Below, in pieces: positions 10,545 to 42,144 of a stretch of 64,000 nt of DNA. This DNA comes from Anaeramoeba ignava BMAN (Eukaryota > Protista > Anaeramoebae). Where the stretch lies: the NCBI GenBank assembly GCA_028826165.1, contig JAPDFW010000102.1, positions 62,001-126,000 on the forward strand. The letters are read 5' to 3'. The notes beneath the pieces were generated by a model, which was not told where the DNA came from, made no database searches, and saw only the letters and a program-made list of their open reading frames with translations. Made by a program: the position numbers and the translations under genes. Position 1 is the first letter of the stretch; each line of letters starts with the position of its first letter.

Positions 10545-10826
10545 CAATTTATTTTGTTTTGTTTTTTTTTATTTAAAAAATTTTTTTTTGTTTTTTTATT
10601 AATAATAAAATTAAAATTAAAATTTAAATTTAAATTTGAATTAAATTCCCAACATTTTTTAAAAAAGAAAGAAAGAAAGAAAGAAAATGAAAAAAATGAT
10701 AAAAATTTTTTTAATTTATTTTTTTTTTATTCTAAAAATTAATAATTATTTTTTTTTCTTAATAATTTATTATTTTTTTTTATTTTATTTTTTTTTCATT
10801 TTTTTTTTCATTTTTTTCCTTTTATT

Positions 10827-13707
10827 ATGTCACAAACTGCAAGAAAAAATTTTGAGTTAGCTAATCAAATCAAAGAAATTTCTGAAGAAGATTTATACAA
10901 ATATGATGCAGATCTCCAAAACACAATAATTACAACTCGTCCTTGGAAAGAAGACCCTCATTATTTTAAAAGAGTTACTATTTCTGGGATTGCTTTACTT
11001 AAAATGGTATAAAACAAATTAAAATTAAAATTCATTGAAGTTCTTATTTTTTCTCTTTTTTTTTAATTTAAAAAAGAAGAAAAAAAATCAAAATAACAAA
11101 ATTTTATTCAATTCCAAATATAAATATAAATATAAATATTAATATAATTATAAATATAAATATAAATATAAATATAAATATAAATATAAATATAAATATA
11201 AATATAAATATAAATATAAATATAAATATAAATATAAATATAAATATAAATATAAATATAAATATAAATATAAATGTAAATATAAATATAAATATAAAAT
11301 AAAATATAAAATATAAATATATAAAATATAAATATAAATATAAATATAAATATAAATATAAATATAAATATAAATATAAATATAAATATAAATATAAATA
11401 TAAATATAAATATAAATATAAATATAAAATAAATAAACATAAACATAAAATAAAAATATAAATATAAAAATATAAAAAATAAACATAAATATAAATATAA
11501 ATATAAATATAAATATAAAAATATAAATAAACATAAATATAAATATAAATATAAATATAAATATAAATATAAATATAAATATAAATATAAATATAAATAT
11601 AAATATAAATATAAATATAAATATAAAATAATATAAAATATAAATATAAATATAAATATAAATATAAATATAAAAATATAAAATATAAAAAAAATAAACC
11701 CAAAAATATAAACATAAAATATAAATATAAAATATAAATATAAATATAAATATAAAAATATAAAAATAAATAAATAAATAAAAAATATTTTAAATAAATA
11801 TAAAATACAAATAAAAATTTAAAAAAAAAATATAAATATAAAATAAAATATAAAATAAATATAAATATAAATATAAATATAAAAATAAAATATAAATATA
11901 AATATAAATTTATTTTATGTATTTTCTCAGGTTATGCATTATAAATATAAAAATGGAGGAAATGAAGAAGTTATGGGGTTAATAAAAGGAAAAAAATATG
12001 GAGATAAATGTTTATAAATTTAAATATGATTATAAATATTTGCAAATATAAATATAAACAGAAATATAAATGTAAAATGCACAATAAAGAAATATAAATA
12101 TAAATATAAATATAAATATATTTAGAAAATATTAAAACATTTTTTGTTTTTTTTTTACAAAAAAAAATTAAAATCAAAATTAAAATTAATGCAAGGAAAA
12201 AATTAAAATTAAAATTCATTTAAAAATAAAAATTAAAATTAAAATTAATGGTTATTTGCAATCAAACAAGTTTGTTTCTTTTAAAATTAAAAAAAATTAA
12301 AAATTAAAATTAAAATTAAAATTAAAATTAAAATTAAAATTAAAATTAAAAAATTTAAAAATTAAAATTTAAATTAAAATTAAAATTAAAATTAAAATTA
12401 AAATTAAAATTAAAATTAAATAAATAATTAAAATTAAAATTAAATTAGGCTGGTCGTTTAGAAAATGCTATTGGATGGTATCATTCACATCCAGGTTATG
12501 GATGTTGGATGTCAGGTGTTGATGTTTCAACACAATTACTTCAACAACAATTTAATGAACCTTGGCTTGCTATTGTTGTAAATATTTATAAAAATGAATT
12601 TAAAAATAAATTTAAAAATGAATTTAAAAATGAATTTAAAAATAAATTTAAAAATGAATTTAAAAATGAATTTAAAAATGAATTTAAAAATGAATTTAAA
12701 AATGAATTTAAAAATGAATTTAAAAATGAATTTAAAAATAAATTTAAAAAAATGAATTTAAAAATGAATTTAAAAATAAATTTAAAAATAAATTTAAAAA
12801 TGAATTTAAAAATAAATTTAAATTTAAAATAAATTTAAAAATAAATTTAAAAATGAATTTAAAAATAAATTTAAATATAAATTTAAAAATAAATTTAAAA
12901 ATGAATTTAAATATAAATTTAAATATAAATTTAAAAATGAATTTAAATATAAATTTAAATATAAATTTAAAAATAAATTTAAAAATAAATTTAAAAATAA
13001 ATTTAAAAATAAATTTAAAAATAAATTTAAATATAAATTTAAAAATGAATTTAAAAATGAATTTAAAAATGAATTTAAAAATAAATTTAAAAATGAATTT
13101 AAAAATGAATTTAAAAATAAATTTAAATTTAGGTTGATCCAAAAAGAACAATTTCATCAGGAAAAGTTGAAATTGGAGCATTTAGAACTTATCCACAAAA
13201 TTATAAACCTCCAGAAACTAAAGAATCGGAATATCAAACAATTCCAATGGATAAAATTGAAGATTTTGGAGTTCATGCAAATACGTAAATATTAAAAAAT
13301 TTATTAAAATTTATTAAATTTCATTAAATTTCATTAAATTTCATTAAATTTCATAAAATTTCAAAAACAGTTATTATTCTTTATCAATTTCATATTTCAA
13401 AAGTTCACAAGACAAGAAAGTTTTAGATTTATTATGGAATCAATATTGGTTAAATACATTATCTTCATCACCATTAATTAGAAACAAAGATTTTGTAAGT
13501 GGACAAGTTTCTGATTTATCAATTAAATTAGAAAATGCAGAACAAAAAATGCATTCAGGAGGTGGAATGCATAGAAGAAAGAAAGAAGAATCACAACTAT
13601 CTAAAATTTCAAAAGATGCTACAAAATCTGCTACTCAACAATTAAATGGTTTAATTTCTCAAGTTATTAAACATAATTTGTTTAATATACTCAATAGCAA
13701 AAAATGA
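10827..13707 (+). CDS. CSN5: COP9 signalosome subunit 5 (JAMM deneddylase), multi-exon; exon 2 garbled
   Basis: [22 protein letters not shown]|VMH; [24 protein letters not shown] (JAMM motif, 12449-); [20 protein letters not shown]; [18 protein letters not shown]; [18 protein letters not shown]. Confidence 0.93.
11117..11910. repeat. Intronic (TAAATA)n microsatellite in CSN5
   Basis: Direct reading. Confidence 0.9.
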
Positions 13708-14010
13708 TTGATTTTCTTTCATTCTTTTTAATCCTTTTATTCTCTTTGATTTTCTCATTCTTTTTCTTTCAAATTTTTGATTCCGTTTTTTTTTTTTTGA
13801 TTTGATTTGATTTGATTTGATTTCTTTTTTTTTTTTCAAAACAATTTCCATTCAAAAAATTTTAATTCAAATGAAAAATCATTAAAAAAATTTCCATTTA
13901 CAAAACATTTCCGAAAATGATTTTAAATTTAAATTTTTTTTTTTTCAAATTTTTATTTTTCATTTTTTTTATTTATCTTTTTCTTTTTTTTTTTTAAAAA
14001 AAAAATTATA

Positions 14011-14523
14011 ATGATTTTTCCACGTTTTCTTTTATTTTTATTTTGTTTTTTTCTGTCAATGACTGCGCAAATAACAAAAGAAGATAAGTCAGCAAATGAC
14101 ATTAGCATAACAACATTGACAACATCAATATTTGCAACTACAATAGCACTCATTGTCATTTTCCAATGTGCAACACAAAGTCCACAGACATCGACAATCG
14201 GAGGAGAAACCTTTTATGAAAAAACATCAACCGCAAATACAACAGAATCACGAGTAACAAACGCGGTAAATTTACGGTATGGAAATCCTGACCAAGATTT
14301 AGGATTTGGAGCGTTAAGTTTTAATACCGGACCTCCAGCTTACAATGCAGGACCACCTGCTTATAATAATCAAGGCTATACAAATCAAGCTTACAATAAT
14401 CAATCATATGCGAATCAACAATATGGAAATCAAAATTATAATTATCCTCCTCAAAATTATGATCCAAATAATACTGGTTATTATGTTCCTAATAATCAAA
14501 ATCAAGGTTTTCAAATGAAGTAA
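14011..14523 (+). CDS. Small membrane protein with signal peptide, TM segment and Y/N/Q/P-rich tail carrying two PPAY motifs
   Basis: 170-aa ORF; hydrophobic N-terminus, TM IFATTIALIVIF, GPPAYNAGPPAY. Confidence 0.6.
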   Translation: MIFPRFLLFLFCFFLSMTAQITKEDKSANDISITTLTTSIFATTIALIVIFQCATQSPQTSTIGGETFYEKTSTANTTESRVTNAVNLRYGNPDQDLGFGALSFNTGPPAYNAGPPAYNNQGYTNQAYNNQSYANQQYGNQNYNYPPQNYDPNNTGYYVPNNQNQGFQMK

Positions 14524-14639
14524 AAGGAAAAAAAGTTTATTATGTTTTTTTTTCTTTTTCTTCATTTTTTTTTATTCATTTTCCAATTTATTTTTTTTTT
14601 CTTTTTTTAAATAAATTTCTCTTTTAAATAAAAAAAAAG

Positions 14640-15654
14640 AATAAAAACAAATTTATCTTCTTTTTTTAGAAGAAGAAAAAATGAAGATCCATTTATTATT
14701 TCATTAGAAGAAAATGAAATTGAAAGAAATTTAATTAGATATATTGAAAAAATTCCAAATCCTCAAAAAGAAATCATTTCAAAAGCAAAATTAATTTATA
14801 ATTCAATTTTGGAAAGAAAACAAAGAATTGATAACAATATAAAAATAAGAGAAAAACAAGAGGAAGAAAACAAAAGAAGAAGAGAAAAAGAAGAAATGAT
14901 TGAGAAAATGAAAATACCACTTTTGGGAAACTTAATTTTCTTATTTATAGCACTTTTTACTTTCATTATTTTAATTAATGTTTATATTGACAAACGTCTT
15001 TCATCAAATATTCTTTATTTTTTTATTCCAATTCTTTTATCAATATTTTCATTTACTCTTCTTTTCTTTATTTGGATAAAATTTTCAATGGATTTGAATA
15101 TTTTATTATCTTCAATTGGAATGATAATTTTATTTATTGAATTATTATTGATTGGATTAAGAATTGAAACAACAATCAAAGGATCTTGGTTATTGATTTT
15201 TATTCCATTTTTCATTTTTATTGGATTTATTATTATTTATTTTATTATCACAATTTCTAAAAATGATGAGTTTTATTTATTTAAAATTGGATTATTAATC
15301 ACTTCCGTTTTATTTTTGATATTTTTCATACTTCTTGGATTAAGATTGGATCAAACAATCAAATCAAATTATGGAATTATTTTTATTCCTTTATTTCTAT
15401 TTGATTTATTACTTTTTTTTGTTATGATTGTGATTCCCTCTAAATTTTTTAATTTATATACTGATGATGATCTTTTTAAATATTTTGGGTTTTTGTTTGC
15501 TTTGGCTCCAATTTTGAGTTTTGAAATAGTTCTTGTTTTATTTATTAATGGTTTATTTAGTTCATTTTTTTATGTTTTCATTCCATTTTATATCGGTTTT
15601 ATTATTGCTCTAATTGTTGTTATTGTTATTTGGTACGAAGATTCCTGGATGTGA
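14640..15654 (+). pseudogene. F-box/multi-TM array copy 1, 5'-truncated (no exon 1, no F-box)
   Basis: Starts abruptly at the ..NLSSFFRRRKNEDPFIISLEENEIE segment shared with copies 2/3/5. TM domain intact. Confidence 0.65.
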
Positions 15655-15819
15655 TCGTTTTTGTGATACTTTTTGTGATTGAATTGATAGACGAAGATTG
15701 AGGAATTTAAATAATTAATTTTTTTGCTTTTTTTTATTCTCTTTTTCAAAAATAAAAAAAGCAACAAAAAAAAGCAAATTTATTTTTTCATTTTTTTCTT
15801 TTCATTTTTAAATTTAAAA

Positions 15820-17432
15820 ATGAATATTTTTGAAACAACAAATTATAAATCAAAACAAGCAATAAAAATTGGAAGAGAACATTTAAATGAATTAAAAAGA
15901 GGAGAATATTGTGAATTTGCAGAACATTTAAAATTACCACCTAAAGAAGAAAATTTAATACTTGAAATGCTTCCAGAAGATAGTAAATTAAAAATAAAAA
16001 TTCTTAATTCTTAATTCTTAATTCTTGATTCTTAATTCAAATTCCCTTTTTAATTAAAAATAATAAAAAAGTTTTTCTTTATATTTTCAAATATTTATCA
16101 CCTGGTGATTTAATAAGAGTTGCTTCAACTTGTACAACATTAAATGAATTATCTCAAGATATAAATACTTGGAGAATTATTACTTATAATTATAATCAAT
16201 TTTTAATTTTAAAAGAAATTGAATTTGAAAAAAGAGATAATGTTTATCAAGAAAATGAAATTCCAATTTATGGAATAATTGAAAAACTTAAATCATTAAC
16301 TAATAATAATATTGATAATGAATTTATTACTGATTCTGGATTTATAACTGAATTTATTACTGATTCTGAATTTGATAAAAAATCAAATCTTATTAATCTA
16401 AATCCAAAACAAAAACTAAGTGAAACAAAACCAAATTTATCTTCTTTTTTTAGAAGAAGAAGAAATGAAGATCCATTTATTATTTCATTAGAAGAAAATG
16501 AAATTGAAAGAAATTTAATTGAATATATTGAAAAAATTCCAAATCCTCAAAAAGAAATCATTTCAAAAGCAAAATTAATTTATAATTCAATTTTGGAAAG
16601 AAAACAACAAATTGATAAGAATATAAAAATAAGAAGAAAACAAGAAAGAAGAAGAAAACAAAAAGAAGCGAGAAGACAATTTCTCAAACAATATAAACAC
16701 CAACTATTATCACTTTTATTTTTTTTATTAATCACAATTTTTGTTTCCATTATTCTAATTAATGTTTATATTGACAATAATCTTTCATCAAATATTCTTT
16801 ATTTTTTCATTCCACTTTTTATATCAATTTTGATTACTGCCTCTTTTTTCTTTTATTTGTACAAAGTTTTACAAGATTCCGAAATTTTAATATATGAAAC
16901 TGGAATGATAATTTTATTTATTGAATTATTATTGATTGGATTAAGAATTGAAACAACAATCAAAGGATCTTGGTTATTGATTTTTATTCCATTTTTCATT
17001 TTTATTGGATTTATTATCATATACTATATCAACTTGATTTTGAAAAAAAATGATTTATTCTATAAATTATTATTATTATCAATTTTCGTTTTATTTTTGA
17101 TATTTTTGATACTTCTTGGATTAAGATTAGATGAAACAATCAAATCAAATTATGGAATTATTTTTATTCCTTTTTTTCTGATCAATTTAGTTACTTTTAT
17201 AATATTATTTTATCTGATTTATGGGAAATATAAAAGGATAATGATTTTTATAATTTTAGCTGGAATTTTGTTATTTGAAATACTTCTTGTTTTGTTTATT
17301 GAAGGTTCAATTAGTCGAATTACTTATGTTTTTATTCCACTTTACTACTTTTTGGTTTTTAACTTTCTTTTCTGTTTTTTTGTTTTGTTTTTAATTTTTA
17401 ATGTGCTTCCCTTTGTTTGTTTTGAAAAATAA
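15820..17432 (+). CDS. F-box + coiled coil + multi-pass TM (Tmemb_185A-like) protein, copy 2
   Basis: Exon 1 ..LILEMLPED, phase-1 intron, exon 2 FLYIFKYLSPGDLIRVASTCTTLNELSQDINTWR. TM repeats KGSWLLIFIPF and NYGIIFIPF. Confidence 0.8.
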
Positions 17433-25714: not shown

Positions 25715-27220
25715 ATGGAATCATTTCAAATAATAAATTATAAATCAAATCCAGCAATAAAAATTGAAAGAGAACATTTAAATCAATTAAAAAAAGGAAG
25801 TTATTGTGAATTTGGAGAATCTTTAAAATTAATTCCAAAAGAAGAAAATTTAATAATTGAAATGCTTCCAGAAGAAAGTAAATTAAAAAATAAATAAAAA
25901 TTCTCAATTTAAATCTTAAATTAAATCTTTTAAAAAGTTTTGCTTTATATTTTCCAATTTTTATCACCTGGAGAATTAATAAGAATTGCTTCAACTTGTA
26001 AAACTTTCAATCAATTATCTGAAGATAAAAATACTTGGAGAAATATTTCTTATAATTATAATCAGTTTTTTATTTTTGATCAAATTGAACTTGAAAAAAA
26101 TAATTATGTTTATCAAGAAGATCAAATTCCAATTTATGGAACAATTAAAGAAAATCAACCAAAAAATGAAAATCAAAATGAAAATGAAAATTCATCTTTT
26201 GTTGATTCAAAAACAAAATCAAGTTTGAAAGCTCTTTTATTAAGAAGAGATCAAAATCAAAATCAAATTGAAAATGATGAAGATATATTATTTGAAAATG
26301 AAATCAAAAATAATCTAATCGAACACATTGAAAAAACATCAAATCCAAAACAAGAATTAGTTTCAAAAGCAAATTTGGTTTATAATGGAATGAAAAAAAG
26401 AAAAGAATTAATTGATGAAAATTTGAAAAGAAAAGAAGAAAATGATAAAAAAGCCAAGAAAATCCAAAAAATTGATAAAGTCTCGTTTGTAAATTTGCTA
26501 TTTTTATTGATAGGATTTATTGCATTCCTGATTGCACTTAATGTTCATATTGAAAAAAAACTTTCATCAAATACTATTTATGTTTTCATTCCAATTCTTT
26601 TACCAATATTGATATTCATTATTCTTTTTTTTTATTTGTCAAAAATTGAAACATATTTATTTTCAATATATGGAATTGGAATGATAATGTTATTTATTCA
26701 ATTATTACTGATTGGATTAAGATCTGATTCAACAATCAAAGGATCTTGGTTATTGATTTTTATTCCATTTTTCATTTTGATTGGAATCTTGATTATTATG
26801 TTGATTGTTTTTTATTTTATTGAAGATCATAAGTTCATAAATACATTTCCATCATTTAATTTTATTATGATATTCTTGTTTTTGATATTTCTTGGATTAA
26901 GATTGGATGATGAAATCAAATGGAATTATGGAATTGTTTTTATTCCTCTATTTTTGATTAATTTATTCCCTTTTTGGATCAGTACTTCTTTTTTGGGTGG
27001 ATTAACACTTGATGAACATGGAGAATTCATTTTTGGTGCTTTTTTGTTCCTTTTCTCCTTAATTTCAATTCCAATTTTAATAATTGAAACATTTATTGTT
27101 TTGTTTCTTGAAGTTCCAAAATTTAATAATATAACTTATGCTTTTATTCCACTTTATCTTTTTTTAGGTTTATTATTATGTTTTTTATCTATTTTAGGTT
27201 TTTTTAAAATATTTCGTTGA
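25715..27220 (+). CDS. F-box/multi-TM copy 8 (intact)
   Basis: Exon 1 plus an uninterrupted 426-aa exon-2 ORF. F-box LIIEMLPEE-ILLYIFQFLSPGELIRIASTCKTFNQLSEDKNTWR. Confidence 0.85.
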
Positions 27221-27274
27221 GAAAAAAATTTTTTTTTTTTATTTTTATTTTTTATTTTCTCATTTTTTAAAAAA

Positions 27275-28789
27275 ATGAAAAATTTTCAACTAATAAATTA
27301 TAAATCAAAACCAGTAGTAAAAATTGAAAGAGAACATTTATATTCTTTACAAATAACGGAAAGTTCTAATTTTGGAGAATCGTTAAAAACACCTCCTTTA
27401 GAAGAAAATTTAATACTTGAAATGCTTCCAGAAGAAAGTAAAATTTGAAAATTAAAAAAATTTTTTTTAAATTCAAATTCCCTTTTTTAATTTTAAAATT
27501 TTAAAAAAGTTTTGCTTTATATTTTCCAATATTTATCACCTGGTGAATTAATAAAAGTTGGTTCAACTTGCACAACTTTAAATGAATTATCTGAAGATAA
27601 AAATACTTGGAGAAATATTTCTTATAATTATAATCAGTTTTTCCTTTTTAATAAAGTTGAAGTTCCAAAAAGAAATGAAATTTATGAAGAAAATCGAATT
27701 CCAATTTGTGGAATAATTAAAGAGTCTCAATTGATAACTTATAATATTAATTCAAAACAAAAAAAACCTGAGAAAACAAATTCAGGTTTAACTTCTCTTT
27801 TTAAAAGAAGAGATCAAGATCAAGATCAAAATCAAAATCAATTTGTAAATGAAATTATTTTATTTGATCGAAAAAAAACGGAGAAGAAATTAATTGAATA
27901 CATTGAAAAAATCCCAAATCCAAAAGAAGAATTAATTTCAAAAGGAAAATTAATTTATAATGGAATAAAAGAAAGAAAACAACAAATTGAAAAAAATTTG
28001 AAAAGAAAAGAAGAAAATGCAAAAAAATGGAAAAAAATTGCAAGAATAGATGATTTTTTATTTGGGAATTTAATATTTTTAGGAATAGGATTTGTTGCAT
28101 TTATTATTACACTTAATGTTTATATTGAGAAAAAATTATCATCAAATACTATTTATATTTTCATTCCACTTCTTTTGCCACTATTGGTATACATTGTTCT
28201 GATTTTTTACTCATTAAAACTTGACAGAGAAACAACATTTTTAGTATATGTATTGATGATTACCGTTTTATTTATTCAATTATTATTGATTGGATTAAGA
28301 GCTGATTCAACAATCAAAGGATCTTGGTTATTGATTTTTCTTCCATTTTTCATTTTGATTGGAATTACTATAATTGGAATAATTATTTGGATTTGCAATG
28401 ATCCTGATTCTATAATTGCAACATTATTAATGATTTTTATTATGCTTTTCTTGTTTCTGATGTTTCTTGGATTAAGATTGGATGGAAAAATCAAATGGAA
28501 TTATGGAATTGTTTTTATTCCTTTGTTTTTTATTAATTTATTTCCTTTTTTTATGAGTCTTTCTTTATTTTGTTTGCATCCTCGAACTTATGCTTGTACA
28601 ATTTTCTTTTCTAACATCCTGATTTTCTTATTCATTTCACTTCCAATTTCACTAATTGAAACATTTATTGTTTTGTTTCTTGAAGTTTCAAAATTTAATC
28701 ATATAACTTATGCTTTTGTTCCACTTTATGCTATTTTCAGTTGCTTTCTTTGTTGGTTATTCTATTTTATTCACGATGAATTTTGTTGA
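27275..28789 (+). CDS. F-box/multi-TM copy 9 (intact)
   Basis: Exon 1 from ATG 27275 plus an uninterrupted 425-aa exon-2 ORF. Confidence 0.85.
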
Positions 28790-28931: not shown

Positions 28932-30998
28932 TCAATATAAACTCAATAATTCTTTTTTGTAATGATTCTCAATAAATTTCCTTCTCAATTTCATTGTTGT
29001 TGTCATCATATCATTTTCAACTGAAAAAGGTTCAGTTTCAATGTAAATATTTCTAATAATTTCAAATCCAAATCGACCGGATTCTCTTCCAATTTTTTCC
29101 ATATCTTTGAGAATCAACTGTTTTGTTTTTTCACTTTGAGAAATTCTTTTGAAAAAAGCTTCTGAATCCTCATTCTCTTGTTTCTCGTCCTTAAAATACT
29201 CCAAAACAGTAGTCTTTTCAGGAACAACAACACCAACCAAATAATTTTGGTCTGAATTACCATAAACAAGAATCTGCATAACATATTGAGAGTTTGAATA
29301 AACGCCTTCGAGAACATCAGGAGCGATATATTCTCCTTGTGATAACTTGAAAATATTCTTTTTGCGGTCGATTACTCTGAAATTACCATTTGGAAGAGCT
29401 TCTCCAATATCTCCTGTATGAAACCAACCGTCAACAATGGATTCCTCTGTTGCTTTCTGGTTTTTGTAGTATCCGTTGAACACATTGTATCCTCTCATCA
29501 AAATTTCACCTCTTGGATTTGGTTGGTCATCAACAGTGTAGTTTAATTCGGGAACATTTTCCAGTTTGAGTTCACAACAACAAACAGGAGGTCCAATTTC
29601 TCCATTGGAAAAAACATCTTCAAAAACTTGGACAGTTCCTCCTGCTGCAGTTTCGCTTAGTCCCCATCCTTGGATGAGATGGGGGTTAATCAGGACTTTG
29701 AAGAATTCTTGATGTAAAGGAAGAAGTGCAGCGCTTCCACAAACAATGATATTGATCCTTCCTCCAAGAAGCTGTTTTGTTTTATTGAAAACTAATTTAT
29801 CCCACAAATCATAAGATTCTCCATTTTCAATCGCCTTTTTTTTTGCTTCGTAGGCGACTTGGAAAAGATATCGACTAAAAACACTTTTTTTCTGGAGTCC
29901 TTGTGTGATTTTCTCGTAAACTTTGGAAAGAACACGCGGAACAGTTGTGAATACTGTTGGTTTAACAAGTTGAAGTTCATCAACTAATCTTGTGATATCT
30001 CCAGTGGAAAAACCAATTTTTGAACCATAAGCAATCATAGCATTACAAAGTGTTCTTTCGAAAATATGACTTAGCGGGAGATAACTGTAATAACATTCTT
30101 CATCTGATAAATCATATCCAATATAATAGCATATCGCAACGGCAGCTATCAAGTTCTGATGAGTAGCAAGCACTCCTTTTGGTTGAGAAGTTGTTCCACT
30201 TGTGTAAATGAGAGAACAAAGATCATCCTCTTTCTGGGGTTGATGAGGATGTTCCTTCGTTTTTCCTGATTCGAAAATGTCTTGGAATTTGTAAATCTTG
30301 ATGTCATGTGAAAGCAAAAATTTGATATCCTCATTTTCCTTCAAGAAACGATCGAGATCATCCTCAGGATTATCAAGAACAATGATTGATTCCAAAGATG
30401 TGCATTTTTCGCATATTTGCTTGAGTTTAGGGATGTTGATGGTTTCTGTGATCACTGTTCTGCATTCCGAATGGTTGAGAATATAAAGAATATTCGGGAT
30501 GCCAAAAGTATGATATAACGGAACTAGTAAAAATGAGTAAGCATAAGAAGCATGTTCAGCAAGAACCCATTCATATCTATTTTTAGCAAAAATTCCAATT
30601 TTATCATCTTTTTTAATTCCGTAGTTGATCAATCCACTTCCAAAAAAAGTTCTTTCTTCGCAGAATTTTTTATAAGTTTTCCATTCATAATCTTCATATT
30701 TCTTAGTTTGTTTGTTGTATTTTCTTGTTCCAAAGACTTCATGATCAGAAAAAGTTCTTGTTGTTGTTTCAAGATTTTCATATAAAGTTGAAACTGAGTC
30801 ATTCCATTTACTAATTAGTTCATCTTTGCAAAGATTGGATCGATAAATTGTTTCCCCATCTTTTTGATAGTTCCATGAATAACATCTTTTACCTTCTTTT
30901 ATATCTACTCTTGGGTATTTTTCTACAACATATCCTTGAACTCTATTTCTTTTCGATCTTATTGGTTTTTCTATTTGATTAAATTCATTATTCCCCAT
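28932..30998 (-). CDS. ACSL: Long-chain fatty acyl-CoA synthetase (eukaryotic ACSL/LACS type), intronless
   Basis: YTSGTTSQPKG, YLPLSHIFER, QGWGLSET, PRGEILMRG, GWFHTGDIG, IDRKKNIFKLSQGEYIAP. Confidence 0.95.
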   Translation of the reverse strand: MGNNEFNQIEKPIRSKRNRVQGYVVEKYPRVDIKEGKRCYSWNYQKDGETIYRSNLCKDELISKWNDSVSTLYENLETTTRTFSDHEVFGTRKYNKQTKKYEDYEWKTYKKFCEERTFFGSGLINYGIKKDDKIGIFAKNRYEWVLAEHASYAYSFLLVPLYHTFGIPNILYILNHSECRTVITETINIPKLKQICEKCTSLESIIVLDNPEDDLDRFLKENEDIKFLLSHDIKIYKFQDIFESGKTKEHPHQPQKEDDLCSLIYTSGTTSQPKGVLATHQNLIAAVAICYYIGYDLSDEECYYSYLPLSHIFERTLCNAMIAYGSKIGFSTGDITRLVDELQLVKPTVFTTVPRVLSKVYEKITQGLQKKSVFSRYLFQVAYEAKKKAIENGESYDLWDKLVFNKTKQLLGGRINIIVCGSAALLPLHQEFFKVLINPHLIQGWGLSETAAGGTVQVFEDVFSNGEIGPPVCCCELKLENVPELNYTVDDQPNPRGEILMRGYNVFNGYYKNQKATEESIVDGWFHTGDIGEALPNGNFRVIDRKKNIFKLSQGEYIAPDVLEGVYSNSQYVMQILVYGNSDQNYLVGVVVPEKTTVLEYFKDEKQENEDSEAFFKRISQSEKTKQLILKDMEKIGRESGRFGFEIIRNIYIETEPFSVENDMMTTTMKLRRKFIENHYKKELLSLY

Positions 30999-31268: not shown

Positions 31269-34200
31269 ATGAGTTATTTTTCAAAAGTAAATTTTTTTCT
31301 TCTTTTTTTTTTCTTCTTTTTTTTTTATTAAAATTCTTTTTAAAAAAGAGAAATCAATTTCCTTTACATCAAGCTTGTCAAAAATCTAATTATAAAGAAG
31401 TTTCAAATTTAATTGAATCTGGAAAAAATGTTAATCAACTTGATGTATAATTTAAATATAAAAAAATAATATTTAAATATAAAAAAATATAAAAAATTAA
31501 TTATAATTTAAATTTAAAATGAATTTTAGAATGTAATTTTAATTAAATTTATAATTATAATTCAATTTATAAATGAAAAATATAAAAAAAATAGAAAGTA
31601 AATTTTTAAATTAAAAAAAATTTTAATAATTTTATAGACTTGTTTTTATCATTATTAAAATAGACAAAATCACCTCTTCATTATGCATGTGAAAATAAAT
31701 CATTTAAAATTATAAAATTATTGATAAATTCAAAATCAAATTTAAACCAAAAAAATGTATTTCTATTTAAAAAAATAAAAACAAAAATAAAATTTAATAT
31801 AAAAAAAATAATAAAAATAATAAATTTATTAATTGATTAGCATGTAAAAAAAAAAGAGAAATAATTTCTAAATTTAAAATTCTTAAAAAGTATAATTCAA
31901 TCTTAATTTCATTTTTTTTAAAAAAATAGGAAGTAAATTTTTGTTTTGTTTTTTTTTAAATGAAAATGTAATTTTTTATAAAAAATTTAAAGGGAGAAAC
32001 ACCATTAATTGTAGCTTGTAAATCACATGCAGATTTTAAAGTTATTGAATTATTAATAAAAAATGGAGCAAGTATAAATATAGCAACAGTTAAATATTCA
32101 AAAAAAATTTTATCATTTTTTATTAAATTTTTAGAATGAAAATAAATAATAAATAATAATAAAAAATATAAAAAAATAGAGAGTATTTTTATTTATTTAA
32201 TTAATTAATTTTTCTAATTATTTTATTTTAATTCTTTTTTTTTTTAGAGTCAAAATGTTTTACATTTTGCTTGTGAAAATAATCAGTCACTAAATGTTAT
32301 AGAATTGCTGTTAAATTCTGGAATAAATCCAAATTCAAAAAATGTAAATTAATATTTTAAATTTAAATATTTATTGAATTTAAATATTTATTAATGTAAA
32401 TTATTGAATTTAAATATTTATTAATGTAAATTATTGAATTTAAATATTTTCGAATTTAAATATTTTTATTAATGTAAATTGAATTGAATTTAAATATTTA
32501 TTGAATTTAAATATTTATTGAATGTAAATTAATATTTTAAATTTAAATATTTATTGAATTAAAATATTTTTGAATTAAAATATTTATTGATTTAAATATT
32601 TTTTTGAATTTAAATATTTATTGATTTAAATATTATTGAATTTAAATATTATTTTGAATTAAATATTATTTGATTTAAATATTATTGAATTTTGATATTA
32701 TTGATTTTTGATTTTTAGTCAGTAAAATATTAATTAATAATCAAATTCATTATTTTCATTCTCATTTTTGTTTTTTGAATTTAGAATGTATAATTTCTTT
32801 TTCAAATTCAAAAATATAAAAAGATTTTTTAAATCAGAAAAAAAAAAATAGCAACAAATCCCACTTCATTTAGCATGTAAAAAAAGAAATGAACCAGAAA
32901 TCATTTCTTTATTAATTAAATCTGGATCAGAAGTTAATTCAACTGATGTAATTAATTTTGATTTTTTTATATTTAATTTTTTATTAAAATTTTTTTTATT
33001 TAGTTTGTAAAAGATTTTTTATTCATTCTTTTGTTTATTTTCTTTTTTGAGATTTAATTTGTTTTTTTTTTAAAAAAATTAAGTTGGTAAATCTTTTTTA
33101 GAAAATGAAAGAGAAAAAAAAAAGATTATTAATTGTATTTAAAATTAGAATCAAACTCCACTTCATATTGCATGTCAATCTCGTGTTGAAAAAAAAGTAA
33201 TTGAACTTCTTATTGAAAATGGAGCTGATGTTGATTGTTTTGATGTTTTTATTAAATCTTCTTTTAATTTTTTTATAATTTAATTTAATCCAAATTATAG
33301 AAAGTAATCCATTTTAAAATTATTTTCTTTCTTTCTTTCTTTCTTTTTTAAAATTATTTTCTTTTTTTATAGAATGTTTGATAAAAGTTTTTTTTTTTTT
33401 TAAGATGATTTTTCTTTTAATTTTTTGATAGAATTTTACTCCATTATTTTATGCTTGTAAATACTCTTTAAATACAGATTCAATTAGATATATTTTGGAA
33501 ACTTATAAAGTTTTTTCGGTTAATATTTTTGATGTAAATTTTTAAAATTTTTTTTTTTTTGGAATTTAAATCAAAAATTTTTATTCCATTTTTTTTTAGG
33601 AAGTAAAAAATTTAATTAATTTTCTTCAAATAAATAATAAATAAATAAAATAAATAAATATAAAAGAAAGTAAAATTTTTATATAAAACTTTTTTTTATA
33701 AATAAAATTCAAAATAAAAAATTTAGGAAAGAACTCCACTTCATTATGCTTGCTTATCTAAAGAAGAAGAACTTATTGAATTATTATTATTTTTTGGAGC
33801 AATTACTGATAAAAAAGATGTGAATAAATAGGAAAATAAGATTTATATATTAAATTAAAAATAAAAAATTTACAAATTAGTTTGTAAAAATTAAAAACAA
33901 GAAAATCATTTGCTTTTTTTATTTAATTGGAATAAAAAATAAAAAATAAAAAATAAAGTTTGTAAAAAACAATTTTAATAATAATTTGAATTGGCAAAAA
34001 AAAAACAAACTAAATTTCTTTTTAAAATTAAAAAAAAAAGCAAAAAAAACCACAAGATTATCTTGATAATACAAATATTGGAAGTGAAGTTTTCAATGTT
34101 TATTCAGGAATAATGAATGATATGGAAAAATTATTTGAAAGAAAAGAATGCACAGATTTTGAAATATTTTGTCAAAATGGGAAAATAGAAGTTCATAAGC

Positions 34201-34745
34201 AAGTTTTAATAGCGAGATATGGAGAAGATGTAGAAAATTTAGCAAAGAATTTACAAAGTTTTACAGTTGAAGAAGTGAAAGAATTTATGAGATTAATTTA
34301 CAGTAGTTTTTTATCACAAAAATCAATATCAACAATCCAAAAAATAAGTTCCCAATTAGGATTTTTTTGGAAAGATAAAGCAAGTATTGCCGGATTAGTT
34401 AGAGATTTAAGTAAATTTTGGGAAGATGAAAAAAGCAAAGATTTCACAATTAGTTTAGAAAATGAAAAGTTTGTTAGAGTTCATAAGTTTATTTTGTTGG
34501 CTCGAAGTGAATTGTTTAGAGGAATGTTTGTTTCTGTTATTGATGATTCTAATTCTGTTCCTGATTATAGTGGAAGATCTTATGAAACAATTAAAGAACT
34601 TATTAGATATTTATATTTTAATGAAATTCAATTTGATTGTCCAGATTTTGTTTTAGAAGAATTAAAAGAAGCTCAAGATTTTTATCAATTAAATGATTAT
34701 TTTCTTTATGAATTAAAAAAAGCAAATAAAAAAAGAAAAATTTAA
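31269..34745 (+). CDS. Ankyrin-repeat (7 repeats + terminal half) + tandem BTB/POZ protein, 23 exons including 14 single-codon microexons
   Basis: Large exons 31269-31286, 31349-31444, 31664-31756, 31993-32088, 32248-32343, 32852-32947, 33149-33244, 33432-33533, 33727-33819, 34041-34745, all phase 0, with TPLH-like motifs. BTB motifs TDFEI..VHKQVLIAR and KDFTI..VHKFILLARSELFRGMF. Confidence 0.88.
31530..33961 (+). other. 14 three-nucleotide microexons (7 pairs) of the ANK-BTB gene
   Basis: AG|NNN|GT at 31530 AAT, 31596 AAA, 31841 CAT, 31930 GAA, 32135 AAT (GA donor), 32180 AGA, 32719 TCA, 32785 AAT, 33004 TTT, 33084 TTG, 33301 AAA, 33373 AAT, 33600 GAA, 33667 AAA, 33881 TTT, 33959 TTT. Note this list gives 16 sites over 8 junctions when the junction to the BTB exon is included. 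Confidence 0.85.
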
Positions 34746-34926: not shown

Positions 34927-37900
34927 TTATAATTTAGATTTAATATCTTCAATCATTTTCAAAACTTGGTCTATTGTAGGTCTTTTTTTAGGGTCAATTC
35001 TCCAACATTGTTGAATAACGGAATTAAAAATACCGTTTTGAGGAAGATCTAAACGTTTATTTTCAATGGCAACTCTTTTTGTTAAAATTGCAGCACTTAA
35101 TCCTTCAAAAGGAACTTTTCTTGTTTGAATTTCCCACAAAATAATTCCAAGTGAATAAATATCAGCGGGAAAAGAGTAATTATCGCCATACATAATTTCA
35201 GGCGCCATCCAATTAAAAGTTCCAACCATTGAATTTAAATGTGTTCTTGATTTATCGATTGTTCTTGACAATCCAAAATCGGCAATTTTGGCAACGCCGA
35301 ATTCATCTAATAAAATATTTGGTGATTTCAAATCACGATGAATAATCTTATATGCGTGAAGATAATATATTCCTTTTGTGATATCCATTGCAAGTCGAAG
35401 CTGTTTTTGTTTGGGTAATTCTTGCGCTTCGCTTTGCAAATAATCAAATAAATTTCCTTGATGACAAAATTCAACAATAATGCATAAATTGGGTTCTTTA
35501 GTGCATGCTCCAAAAAATTGCACTATGTTTGGATGAGCCAATTGGCTTAGAATTGATAATTCTGTTTTAAAATCGTTCATTTCCAATTCGGACATACTTT
35601 CCGAAAATAAAAGTTTCATCACTGCAACATCAAGTCCAAGCCAAACCCCTTGGAACACTTCCTTGAATGATCCTCTTGCAATGAATTTTTTTAAAATTAA
35701 CGATTCAAAATCAATTTCTTTGTTGATTTGTATTGGTTGATAATTAAAATTTATTGTGGATATTTTGTTCGGTGTTTTGGGTGTTGCATTGATGTTTTCA
35801 ATTGGTTTTGAATTTGTTTGTCCGCTGTCGCTATAATTTGAATGTGAATTTGAATTTGAATTTGAATCCGTGTTTGATGATATTAAATTTATGCTTATAT
35901 TCATTTGAGATTTGGAGTTTGTTCGACTTTCTTGATTTCCAGATTTCGATGGAATATAACTTTTTATAAATTCTACTATTTCTGGACTTGCTAAATCTTC
36001 TGGTTTTTTATGCTAATTATTACATTTATCAATATTTTTTTTTAAAATTAGAAAAAAAGAAAATATAAGACAAAAAATATTAATTTTTTTACATTCTAAA
36101 TCAAAATCAAAATCAAATTTAAAATCAAAATTATTTGAATTTTTTATTTTTTGATTTTTACAGTCTTATTTTTTTTTTATAAAAATAAGATTTCTCTTCT
36201 TCTTCTTCTTTTTTTTTTTTAAATTTGATTTATTTTATTTTACTGTTAATAAAGTTTTATCAGCTCCATAATCTAATAATAATTTGATTTGATTTTGTTG
36301 AAGTTTAAATTTGCAAGCTAAATGAAGTGGTGTATTTCCCTAATTTTAATTTCAAAATGAATTTTAATTTCAAAATGAATTTTAATTTCAAAATGAATTT
36401 TAATTTCAAAATGAATTTTAATTTCAAAATGAATTTTAATTTCAAAATGAATTTTAATTTCAAAATGAATTTTAATTTCAAAATGAATTTTAATTTCAAA
36501 ATGAATTTTAATTTCAAAATGAATTTTAATTTTCAAAATGAATTTTAATTTCAAAATGAATTTTAATTTCAAAATGAATTTTACACTCTAAATAAAAAGA
36601 ATTTATAATAAATCAATTAAAATTGCTTTTCTCTTCTTTTTTTTTTAAATAATAATTACCATCTAAATTATTAAATTTTTTAATTATTTTTTTAATATGA
36701 ATTTTAATTTTTAATTTTTTACATCTTTTTCATTAATTTTAGAATTTTTTTTTAATAATAATTTAAGAACCCTTTCATCACATTCAGCACAAAGACATAA
36801 TATATGAAGAGGTGATTGCTCCTATTTTTTTTTAAAAAAAAATATCAACAAAAATTTATTGAATAAGTTTAAGATCTTTTTTTTAAAAAAAAAAAAACTA
36901 ATTTTATTTTTACATACTTTTGTTTAAATTTTTTGTTTAATATTTTTTTCTTTACAAATAAAAATTTTTAAAATTTGAAGTTACATTCTTTTTATTTTTA
37001 AAAAAAATAAGAATATTTTTAAATAATTAAATTAATAAAATTGATTTTTTTTTAAAAGAAAAAGAAAAAGAAAAAGAAAATATACATTTTTTATATTAAC
37101 ATCACACTCTAAATCTATTAGTTTAGATATTATTGCATAATTTCTAGGATGATATTTGCATGCAATATGAAGAGGTGTATCTTTCTGTTATAATAAAAAT
37201 AAGGAATAAAATTATCATTATTATCATTTACTTTTTTTTTTTAATATAAATTAAATTTAAAATTCATACAAACTAATTTAATTTTTTATTTATAAAAAAA
37301 TTTAAGTTTAAGTTTAAGTTTTCTTTTCTAATAAAAAAATAAAACATACTATTTTTAAAATATAAATTTAAATATAAATATAAATTTAAATATAAATATA
37401 AATTTAAATATAAATATAAATATAAATATAAATATAAATATAAATATAAATTTAAATTTAAATATAAAATAATACCAGAATTTCTTGCATTAAATTGTGC
37501 ATTTGCTTTTGCAAATAAATCAAAAAATTCAGGTTTAACAAAAGAATTTTTGCATAAAAGATGTAATGGGGATTCTTGCTATAAATAATAAAAAGGATTT
37601 AATTAAAAATCAAATTTAAAACTAAAATTAAAATGTATATACATTCTAATTAAAATAAAATGTTTTTTTTTTAAAATTAATTATTCTATTCATTCTTTTT
37701 TCCAATAAAAAAAATATTCATTTTATATATTTTACCCTCTAAATAAAACATAAATTATTATTATTATTAATAAAAATACAATCTCAAATATTAAATTTAC
37801 ATTTTGAGAATTCACATCAGCATCAGCTAATATTAATTTTTGGATTGAATTTATATCAAGTTCATTATAACAAAGTAAATGTAAAGGTGTTTCATCCTGA

Positions 37901-40900
37901 GAAAAAAAAAATAATTTTTTAAATTTTCATTATAATTATAATTATAATTATTATGAAAAAATAGAAAAACAAACATTCTAATTAAAAGAAAAAAAAATTA
38001 TAAAATTATATATAAAACAAAAAACATAAACAAATATTTTTTTTACCATCTAAATAAAATTAAATTTAATTAAATATTTCCAATTTGAATTTCAATTAAA
38101 ATGATAAAAATGCATACATCTTTTAATTTTGTATTTGCAGAGGAAACCAATAAAGTATCTATTAAATCATATTGTTTGGTTTTACAAATATAATGAAGAG
38201 GAGTTGAATTCTAATAAAAAAAAGGAAATTTTTTTTTAAAAAAAAACCTTTGTTAAAAATCTAAAAAAAAATATTTAAATTACATCCTTAAAAAAAAGAA
38301 AAGAAAAATTAATAAAATTAAAATGAAAAATTAAATCAAATTTACTTTCTAAAATGAAATGAAAATAAATAAATTTATGAAATAATTTCCAATTTTTTTT
38401 TCTCTCTTACATTTTGAGCATTTATATCTGCTCCTGAACTTAAAATCAATTCTAATATAGATTTTTCAACTTTATTCATACAAAGAAGATGAAGAGGAGT
38501 AAATTTCTAAATGGATAAAAAATTCAAATTAATAAATTAACAATATTTAATCTAATAAAAATAATATCAAACATCCTAAAATTTAAAAAGAAATTTGATT
38601 AGAATCTAAAAGGAAAATAAATTAAAAATTAAATACATTCTATTAAATCAATTAATAAAATTAAAATTAAGAAAAAAAACTTTCTTTCATTGTTTTTATT
38701 TTATTACATTTTTTATATTTAATTTTGCACCCTTTTTTATTAATAATTTAATAATTTCAGAATTTGGATGATAATATAAGCTTGGATCTGTTAAATTTGC
38801 ATCCTAAAAAAAAATTAAAATGATTAATAATAATTTAATTCAAAATATTTCCAAAAAAAAAGAAAAAAATTTTTTTGTACAATTCTATTTTTAGAAGGAT
38901 CAAAACAACAAATATCTCCATGTTTAGGAAAAAAAGCAGATGCAAAATGAAATGGAGTATTTTCCTAATTTTTTAATAACAAATAAAAATCAAAATAAAA
39001 ATCAAAATCAAAATCAAAATCAAAATCAAAACGATTATTTTTTACACTCTAAAATTAAAAACAGAAATAAATTTTCTTAATGAATATATTCAAAAAAAAA
39101 AGAAAAGGAATGATTATTTAAATATTTACATTCTAAATAATAAAATATAAAATGAATTTTTCTTTTTTTTTTTAAATGATAATAATTTTATTTGAATAAT
39201 TTACATCTTGAATATTTAGATCTGAACCCAAAGTAAGTAAAGATTGAATAACAGAAACATCTACTTTAAATAAGCAAGCGATATGTAATGGAGTACGTCC
39301 CTTAAATTTTTTTATTAAAAACAAGATGAGAATATTTTTAATTTAATTTTTAATTTTTATTTTTATTTACATACTAAAATTATTTAAGGAAATTATATTT
39401 AAATATTTAATTTTATACATAAATTTTAAAGCGTAATATTACGTTCTAAATTAGAAAAATTTTAATTTTAATTTTAATTTTAATTTTAATTTTAAAGAAA
39501 AATAATTGAAAATTATTACATTTTGAGAATTAGGATTTGGACCTGCTTTTTCAATAATTTCGAAAATTTCTTTATTTTGTGAGTATTGAACTGCATAATG
39601 TAATGGTGTATTTCCCTGTATTTTGAAGTATTTCATTTACAATTTTATTAATAATTTTATATATAATTTTATAAATAATTTTATAATTAATTTTATAAAT
39701 AATTATATAAATAATTTTATAAATAATTTAATAAATAATTTTATAAATAATTTTATAAATAATTTTATAAATAATTTTATAAATAATTTAATAAATAATT
39801 TTATAATTAATTATATAAATAATTTTATAAATAATTTTATAATTTATAAATAATTTTATATTTAATTTTATAAATAATTTTATAAATAATTTTATAATTA
39901 ATTTTATAAATAATTTTTATAAATAATTTTATATTTAATTTTATAAATAATTTTATAATTAATTTTATAAATAATTTTATATTTAATTTTATAATTTTTA
40001 TTAATTTTATAAATAATTTTATAAATAATTTTTATATTTAATTTTATAAAAAATTTTATAAATTTTTTATAAATAATTTTTATAAAATAATTTTATAATT
40101 AATTTTATAAGTAATTTTATAAATAATTTTATAAATAATTTTATATATAATTTTATATTTAATTTTATAAATAATTTTATAAATAATTTTATAAATAATT
40201 TTATAAATAATTTTATAAATAATTTTATAAATAATTTTATAAATAATTTTATAAATAATTTTATAAATAATTATAAATAATTTTATAAATAATTTTATAA
40301 ATAATTTAATAAATAATTTTATAAATAATTTAATAAATAATTTTATAAATAATTTAATAATTAATTTAATAATTAATTTTATATTTAATTTTATATTTAA
40401 TTTTTATATTTTATTTTCAATAATTTAATAACTAATTTTATAAATAAATTTTTATAAATAATTTTATAAATAATTTAATAAATAATTTTTTATAAAATAA
40501 TTTTAATTTAATTTTTAATAAATATAATTTTATATTTAAATTTTTTAATTATTTAATTTTATAAATAATTTTATAATTAATTTTATAATTAATTTTATAA
40601 ATAATTTTATAAAATAATTTTATAAATAATTTTATAAATAATTTTTAAATAATTTTATAAAATAATTTTATAAATAATTTTATAAATAATTTTTATAAAT
40701 AATTTTATAAATAATTTTTAAATAATTTTATAAATAATTTTATAAATAATTTTTATAAATAATTTAATAACTAATTTTATAAATAATTTTATATTTAATT
40801 TTATAAATAATTTTATATTTAATTTTATAAATAATTTTATAAATAATTTTATAAATAATTTTATAAAATAATTTTATAAAATAATTTTATATTTAATTTT

Positions 40901-42144
40901 AAATAATTTTATAAATAATTTTATAAATAATTTAATAAATAATTTTATAAATAATTTAATAAATAATTTTTTATTTAATTTAATAATTAATTTAATAATT
41001 AATTTTATAAATAATTTTATAAATAAATAAATTTTATAAATAATTTTATAAATAATTTTATAAATAATTTTATATTTAATTTTATAATTAATTTAATTTT
41101 ATAAATAATTTTATAAATAATTTTATAAATAATTTTATAAATAATTTTATAATTAATTTTATAATTAATTTTATAATTAATTTTATAAATAATTTTATAT
41201 ATAATTTTATTAATAATTTTATTAATAATTTGATAAATAATTTTATTAATAATTTTATAAATAATTTTATAATTAATTTGATAAATAATTTATAATTAAT
41301 TTAATAATTAATTTTATAAATAATTTTATAAATAATTTTATAAATAATTTTATAAATAATTTTATATTTAAATAATTAATTTTATAATTAATTTTATAAT
41401 TAATTTTATAATTAATTTTATAATTAATTTTTAAATAATTTTATATATAATTTTTAATAATTTTATTAATAAATAAATAATTTTATAATAATTTTTTAAA
41501 TAATTTTATAAATAATTTTATAAATAATTTTTATAAATAATTTTATTAATAATTTGATAAATAATTTTATTAATAATTTTATAAAATAATTTTATAAATA
41601 ATTTTATAAATAATTTTATAATTAATTTTATAAATAATTTTATAAATAATTTTATATATAATTTTATAAATAATTTTATAAATAATTTTATAAATAATTT
41701 TATAAATAATTTTATTAATAATTTTATAAATAATTTTATAAATAATTTTATAATTAATTTTATAAATAATTTTATAATTAATTTTATATTTAATTTTATA
41801 ATTAAATTTTGATAGATTTATTTGCTAAAATTTATTTTTTGTTTAAAAAAAAACTGACATTCTAAATTAGAAAGTTGATCAACAATTTTTAAAAAAGAAA
41901 GAAAGAAAAAAAAAAATTAAAATAAAATTAAATTATAAAAAAAAAAGAGGAAATTCGATAAAAATTACTTTCTAAAAAAATTTTTTTTCAATAACAAAAA
42001 TTTAAATAAAAAATAAAAGAAAATTAAAATTTATTTTTTTACATCAACTTTATTAAGTTGCCCTTTTTTTTTCCAAACAGTTGGTTTAAGTCTTTTTTTA
42101 ATTTGTTCGATATCATTTTGTTCGATTGCTCGAAAAATTGACAT
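34927..42144 (-). CDS. Ankyrin-repeat (about 10 repeats) + TKL (Raf/MAP3K-like) protein kinase with 22 single-codon microexons
   Basis: Large exons 42144-42043, 39615-39520, 39300-39205, 38964-38881, 38803-38708, 38506-38411, 38210-38118, 37896-37801, 37578-~37477, 37184-37086, 36821-36723, 36339-36244, 36012-34927. Kinase motifs VAVMKL, HRDLKSPN, DFG, GTFNWMAPE. Confidence 0.88.
36342..36580. repeat. Intronic 18-bp tandem repeat (TTTTAATTTCAAAATGAA)n
   Basis: About 13 near-perfect units between a microexon and an ankyrin exon. Confidence 0.9.
39640..41810. repeat. 2.2-kb intronic (TAAATAATTTTA)n satellite
   Basis: Direct reading; lies between microexon 41859 and exon 39615. Confidence 0.9.

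Follow-up and report, generated by a model that had tools for sequence, protein, structure and literature searches.

In an ankyrin-BTB gene of Anaeramoeba ignava, the intervals that follow the ankyrin exons hold isolated single codons flanked by canonical splice sites, nearly always two per interval. Each such junction is probably composed of three ordinary short phase-0 spliceosomal introns one codon apart, with both codons normally included in the mRNA. The observations comprise the signals for splicing, the evidence that the codons are under coding constraint, the hairpin length they restore, one inclusion event in a transcript, and the presence of the layout in two species.

The gene lies at 31269-34745 on the forward strand of the window, which here means the whole 64-kb stretch of DNA that was analysed. 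It opens with an exon of 6 codons, continues with eight ankyrin exons that are each 93-102 nt long, and closes with an exon of 705 nt; every exon boundary is in phase 0. The last exon matches GenBank KAJ5069843.1 (A. ignava), which has ankyrin repeats and a BTB domain. Exon 1 (31269-31286, +; MSYFSK) agrees with the start of that protein and is followed by a plain 62-nt intron without a microexon. The ankyrin exons, with one repeat each within 31349-33819 (+), are the same in the GenBank model: 31349-31444, 31664-31756, 31993-32088, 32248-32343, 32852-32947, 33149-33244, 33432-33533, and 33727-33819. The last exon (34041-34745, +) encodes a partial terminal repeat, a segment that is BTB-like by eye, and the BTB domain itself (Pfam PF00651, E = 3.2e-16, residues 125-219 of the exon, 59.9 bits vs. 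a cut-off of 20.5). Pfam ankyrin families also match KAJ5069843.1. No signal peptide is evident by inspection at the N-terminus, where the six residues of exon 1 run directly into an ankyrin repeat. The last exon has 812 relatives at E up to 0.001, and the named ones are all from Anaeramoeba. KAJ5069843.1 most likely belongs to a family with hundreds of members and acts as an Ank-BTB adaptor that binds targets; judging from its BTB match, it is probably a Cullin-3-type substrate adaptor.

Each of the eight ankyrin exons is followed by an interval of 159-508 nt, and together these intervals contain 15 canonical TAG/AAG|NNN|GT units. All eight junctions have the place and reading that a sequence-only reading of this DNA had proposed (bars mark exon boundaries; all +): D|N|K|TKSPLH (N at 31530-31532, K at 31595-31597), N|H|E|GETPL (H at 31841-31843, E at 31930-31932), T|N|R|SQNVLH (N at 32135-32137, R at 32180-32182), N|S|N|QQIPLH (S at 32719-32721, N at 32785-32787, with a repetitive first intron of 375 nt), D|F|L|NQTPLH (F at 33004-33006, L at 33084-33086), D|K|N|NFTPLF (K at 33301-33303, N at 33373-33375), D|E|K|ERTPLH (E at 33600-33602, K at 33667-33669), and, at the link to the last exon, D|F|F|QKKPQDYL (F at 33881-33883, F at 33959-33961). 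Each unit pair splits its interval into three segments, all as long as a typical intron, and the gene carries no surplus units, having exactly two (once, one) per junction. The exception is the third junction, where R is canonical and N is doubtful, being followed by GA rather than GT; its use would need introns of 46 and 42 nt. Either this junction has the single microexon R or the assembly, which was built from Nanopore reads plus Pilon (PMC11550330), has a one-base error there. Thus 15 of the 16 microexons first counted in this gene stand and the sixteenth is doubtful; for this gene and the neighbouring ankyrin-kinase gene together, the 19 junctions stand, with 37 canonical units and one doubtful one in place of the 38 claimed.

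Dinucleotide shuffles of the same intervals gave a mean of 0.74 AG|NNN|GT units and a maximum of 4 in 1000 shuffles, and alternative unit lengths from 0 to 12 nt occur only 0-2 times each. Donors are mostly GTAA and acceptors TAG or AAG at the units, as at the large exons, within introns that are 92% A+T. Across the window, 33 of the 35 strict 3-nt units fall inside the two ankyrin genes in coding orientation; the exonic share is 0.42. A sequencing run (X1) gave a word share of 0.44, near that exonic share, and carries no evidential weight. The introns of the KAJ5069843.1 gene have a mean identity of 0.57, vs. 0.55 when shuffled, and its ankyrin exons are 25-52% identical to each other in protein sequence. 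Since intron identity is at shuffle level and the exons are this divergent, the earlier claim against recent copying stands, as far as this one gene is concerned.

The GenBank protein (496 aa) equals our model minus 16 codons; with the codons it would be 512 aa. Five further GenBank models over simple junctions at the loci we fetched also join the large exons directly, and a check suggested by the sequence-only reading came out positive: repeats are two residues short at the hairpin in all A. ignava models mapped. To express this we used a landmark distance, counted between the N of GAxxN and the T of TPLH. This distance is 8 in 34 of 35 repeats of intronless paralogs and in 78 of 94 outside ankyrin repeats, and a length of 6 is absent from both of these comparison sets. 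It is 6 at 12 of 12 junctions in the GenBank models and becomes 8 at 32 of 35 junctions once the units are added.

The codons themselves are also constrained. None of 175 units is a stop codon, compared to 9.4% of intron triplets, and a separate count over the fetched loci gave 0 of 218. Tryptophan accounts for 5 of 94 units vs. a background of 0.4%. Aromatic residues favour the second slot (34% vs. 4%, p = 4e-4), as they tend to do in other ankyrins, and the observed slot order fits the residue preferences of other ankyrins with a log-likelihood of -249, vs. -272 when swapped. The isolated residues correspond to ankyrin columns 33 and 1, the xx of D-x-x-G-x-TPLH, in the beta-turn between Asp32 and Gly2. 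Columns 1 and 33 are among the positions linked to substrate specificity (PMC8415598), and designed ankyrins built on the DxxGxTPLH scaffold are randomised at positions 2 and 3 (PMC4308713), which are the two residues that the units isolate. Variability in the microexon columns is 3.3 and 3.5 bits, next to 3.0 and 3.4 bits at the two following, exon-borne positions. The lack of stops, the slot-specific residues, and the restored hairpin length show that the units are coding.

Transcript evidence comes from EukProt, whose A. ignava entries were taken as transcript-derived because they carry transcript-assembly names and show some polymorphic differences from the genome models. One EukProt ORF (P0152) differs from GenBank KAJ5069543.1 (P0023) solely by K,S inserted in NYRD|LKRP. 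The KAJ5069543.1 gene maps to contig C93 with a 241-nt gap at this point, and a motif search found, inside the gap, TAG|AAA|GT at 196095-196097 and TAG|AGT|GT at 196160-196162, so that the three introns would measure 67, 62, and 106 nt. Over 85.6 Mb (both strands) this motif occurs 54 times, so a chance match in 241 nt is expected at about 1.5e-4. Nor can K,S be obtained by shifting the outer donor or acceptor, since the first codon would then be GTN or the last NAG. This junction is of the last-link type, the same as D|F|F|QKKP in the KAJ5069843.1 gene. Both codons are therefore spliced in at one junction of one paralog, as represented by an assembled contig, which gives one isoform only. No EukProt ORF was found for KAJ5069843.1, nor were there partners for the multi-junction A. 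ignava models checked, which could reflect low expression or fragmentation by mixed splicing. Two A. ignava ankyrin genes with EukProt transcripts (P0059 and P0107) are intronless. A T,V unit pair guessed for another sequence (P0005) was not found, a result with no weight either way.

The neighbouring ankyrin-kinase gene (34927-42144, −; last exon 36012-34927) has 11 junctions and 22 single-codon units. Its kinase part is transcribed, as seen in a EukProt entry (P0284) that covers the kinase exon only; we infer that the ankyrin array and the kinase are joined in one mRNA. The entry begins at a Met inside the last exon (34927-35904, −), and its Ser/His run is longer by two residues. Several irregularities were observed in this gene. 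A 2.2-kb intron (41858-39616, −) is nearly pure A/T tandem repeat, with a GC content of 1.7% in 40001-42000, and directly follows a microexon with a GTCAGT donor. At junction 8 (~37476, −) there is one extra G ahead of the donor; either the assembly is wrong at this base or the donor is in phase 1 and the acceptor is shifted to match. One repeat (38964-38699, −) is split by an extra intron, with an insertion. Elsewhere in the window, we observed a tandem pair of F-box proteins that match membrane proteins weakly (25940-28789, +), a 688-aa ORF for an AMP-binding enzyme (28932-30998, −) divergent from the ankyrin-BTB gene, and a kinase-like gene with introns (~45700-43560, −) whose catalytic motifs appear altered by eye (YRNLNPKN, DFS), making it a possible pseudokinase.

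The proposal that an ankyrin exon with two microexons is a genome-wide module was supported. A strict pattern of microexon, intron, and xxTPLH exon had 42 matches on 32 contigs and none in controls. Strict 3-nt pairs number 727 genome-wide, vs. 14 for a 4-nt control and 215 for a reversed-pattern control, and strict triples 271 vs. 57; these pair and triple counts take in non-ankyrin arrays. Of 51 simple junctions, taken from 20 fetched loci together with the window, 47 have exactly two units, though the fetched loci, having been selected for at least one unit, give no estimate of the share of ankyrin genes affected. Junction length rises with unit number, from 140 to 209 and 281 nt for 1, 2, and 3 units (n = 1, 31, and 3), and median intron length at the junctions is 65-69 nt. 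Arrays are also attached to different effectors, as had been proposed: among sampled loci, the 3' end is a BTB-like exon in 10 (including KAJ5069843.1), a kinase in three (including the neighbouring gene), or else an unrelated 1053-aa ORF.

Surveying ankyrin genes, as the sequence-only reading had recommended, gave a mixed picture: many have the layout, many others are intronless, including numerous long ankyrin ORFs, and one has a single microexon per junction. This last gene (L028; C73:296000-305900, −) carries a run of four units (FSSK) at its last link; its upstream exon is one codon longer, and the landmark distance is again 8 where counted by eye. It may represent an intermediate state. 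Overall, the layout looks like an intron triad inherited within an expanded ankyrin family rather than a mobile cassette. Elsewhere in the A. ignava genome there are chains of single-codon units ~75 nt apart, up to ~10 in succession, on contigs C1 (409405-413130, 942332-942793, and 1058079-1073174, all −), C2 (7159-9558, −), C61 (324091-334895, −, and 392757-395411, +), and C73 (175173-180902). In the C1:409-413 kb chain the introns are near-identical and the codon alone varies, and in the C1:1058-1073 kb chain the codons are mainly M, I, L, F, and G.

The same layout is found in Anaeramoeba flamelloides, which has a mean amino-acid identity of 37% with A. ignava (PMC11550330). KAJ6234995.1 has it, as does the ortholog of that gene in a second strain; it is absent from three other A. 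flamelloides genes examined (L032, L034, and L038), and L035 is an ambiguous case. All 24 of 24 chained units keep AG and GT across the two separately assembled strains. In KAJ6234995.1 (L031:8379-9446 and 10002-16688) there are runs of five (NSWKG), four (QHNS), and six (SHWTSS) units, and ~14 in one interval, compared to the 2-3 needed per junction; the surplus units could make longer loops or be relics. Some A. flamelloides junctions have a landmark distance of 7, 9, or 10 instead of 8. Apart from one S/Y difference, the second strain keeps these unit runs. Near position 16791 of the KAJ6234995.1 locus lies an ankyrin exon that the annotation lacks.

An ankyrin gene of the sponge Oscarella (P0220/L036) has a phase-0 intron at or beside 33|1 at each of its 6 junctions and lacks the single-codon units. 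Of the three introns, the middle one (33|1) may thus be the old one, with one sponge gene making the case for its ancestry. Given this intron position in the sponge and the retention of the 33|1 and 1|2 introns in the one-microexon gene of A. ignava, the outer introns are probably later gains. The near-identical introns of the C1:409-413 kb array make tandem duplication of an intron-plus-codon unit a plausible source.

These results can be drawn together in a single model. The two 3-nt exons would isolate beta-turn columns 33 and 1 on the binding face of a protein of ~512 aa. Each ~65-nt intron would be recognised across itself through ordinary GTAA and TAG sites and removed in turn; the first splicing step would make the codon part of the upstream exon. 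Because each short intron would be recognised alone and the introns removed sequentially, a 3-nt exon would never have to be defined across its length. The 33|1 intron would descend from an older one-repeat-per-exon arrangement, with the outer two gained next to it, probably when a unit of intron plus codon was duplicated in tandem, and the Ank-BTB product would have diversified mainly through gene duplication and substitution.

The units could instead be used alternatively, so that frame-preserving skipping, or choice among surplus units, would generate hairpin tips combinatorially. KAJ5069843.1 could then have up to 4^8 forms, a splicing-made library of binders on BTB and kinase effectors. 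All units are symmetric and in phase 0, so any subset would stay in frame, and they occupy positions tied to binding specificity (PMC8415598, PMC4308713). The long unit chains in A. ignava and the runs of 4, 5, 6, and ~14 units at two A. flamelloides loci (L031 and L033) also fit. However, the KAJ5069843.1 gene and ~92% of sampled junctions have no spare units to choose from, and skipping could merely shorten a conserved turn to a length that neither the intronless nor the outside repeats show. The microexon columns are also about as variable as the next two exon-borne positions, and the single informative transcript carries both units. We therefore regard alternative use as unlikely. A broader version, that single-codon exons at ankyrin specificity positions serve as a splicing-based diversity generator, supplying BTB (degradation) and kinase (signalling) outputs with a natural repertoire of binders, possibly as a means of dealing with bacterial symbionts and prey, is a speculative and distinctly unlikely proposal.

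That the units are non-coding, either cryptic signals or intermediate steps in recursive splicing, and are removed to leave the 496-aa mRNA product as annotated, seems very improbable. The GenBank models do omit them, and the genome project mapped RNA-seq with HISAT2 (PMC11550330). Yet zero-length AG|GT ratchet points are absent (0 in the eight junctions), and stop avoidance, slot-specific residues, and restored length would be senseless for non-coding bases. Exons of 3 nt are commonly missed by aligners and predictors, and introns of 200 nt should not require recursive steps. The EukProt ORF, moreover, includes the codons, and its K,S cannot come from a shifted outer donor or acceptor. We give almost no credence to chance matches in AT-rich introns or to an assembly artefact: a 92% A+T content, a Nanopore-based assembly (PMC11550330), and two one-base anomalies in the window could invite such a reading, but the shuffle, length, and reversed-pattern controls rule it out, and two A. 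flamelloides strains whose genomes were assembled separately both have the units. The reading we prefer remains that of three ordinary introns with both codons normally included.

The components of this arrangement are known singly. Human RPS24 has a single 3-nt microexon (10.1101/2024.12.24.630263); as in Anaeramoeba, the exon in such cases is one codon long, keeps the frame, and is flanked by canonical splice sites, but they are isolated and often tissue-regulated, whereas the Anaeramoeba units are paired, at a fixed repeat position, at hundreds of sites, and among ~65-nt introns. Schistosome micro-exon genes (MEGs) encode secreted proteins mostly from 3-81 nt exons, with introns of 0.1-5 kb and documented isoforms (10.1101/2023.06.21.545858). 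Their runs of very short exons are likewise missed in automatic annotation, and skipping could diversify either system. The KAJ5069843.1 units differ in being always 3 nt, in making up 48 of 1539 nt of coding sequence (3%), and in lying inside a folded repeat domain; the gene has neither the mostly-microexon coding sequence nor the long introns of MEGs, and no evident signal peptide. The Oscarella gene shares one repeat per phase-0 exon and the hairpin intron at 33|1, with one intron per junction and no microexons, whereas Anaeramoeba has further introns at 32|33 and 1|2. Libraries of designed ankyrins (PMC4308713) randomise the same two residues but are engineered; in this natural gene, diversification of those positions by splicing is only a possibility. 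Dscam-type genes have clusters of mutually exclusive exons. They would be an analogue if surplus units were chosen alternatively, and surplus occurs only at some A. flamelloides junctions. We found no paper on microexons in Anaeramoeba, in a search whose coverage of subscription journals was thin, and two Anaeramoeba genome papers do not mention ankyrins. The arrangement as a whole appears to be new.

For splicing, the hundreds of sites with 3-nt exons in succession are a test of minimal exon size and of the order in which packed introns are removed. For intron origin, the codon-spaced introns, the apparent one-microexon intermediate, and the near-identical unit arrays together provide a system in which to study gain by duplication. 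For annotation, the A. ignava models mapped miss two tip residues per repeat, which corrupts predictions of structure and specificity, and a landmark distance of 6 instead of 8 is a signature that can be screened in any proteome. If inclusion of the units varies, a single-celled eukaryote would have a new way of diversifying its receptors.
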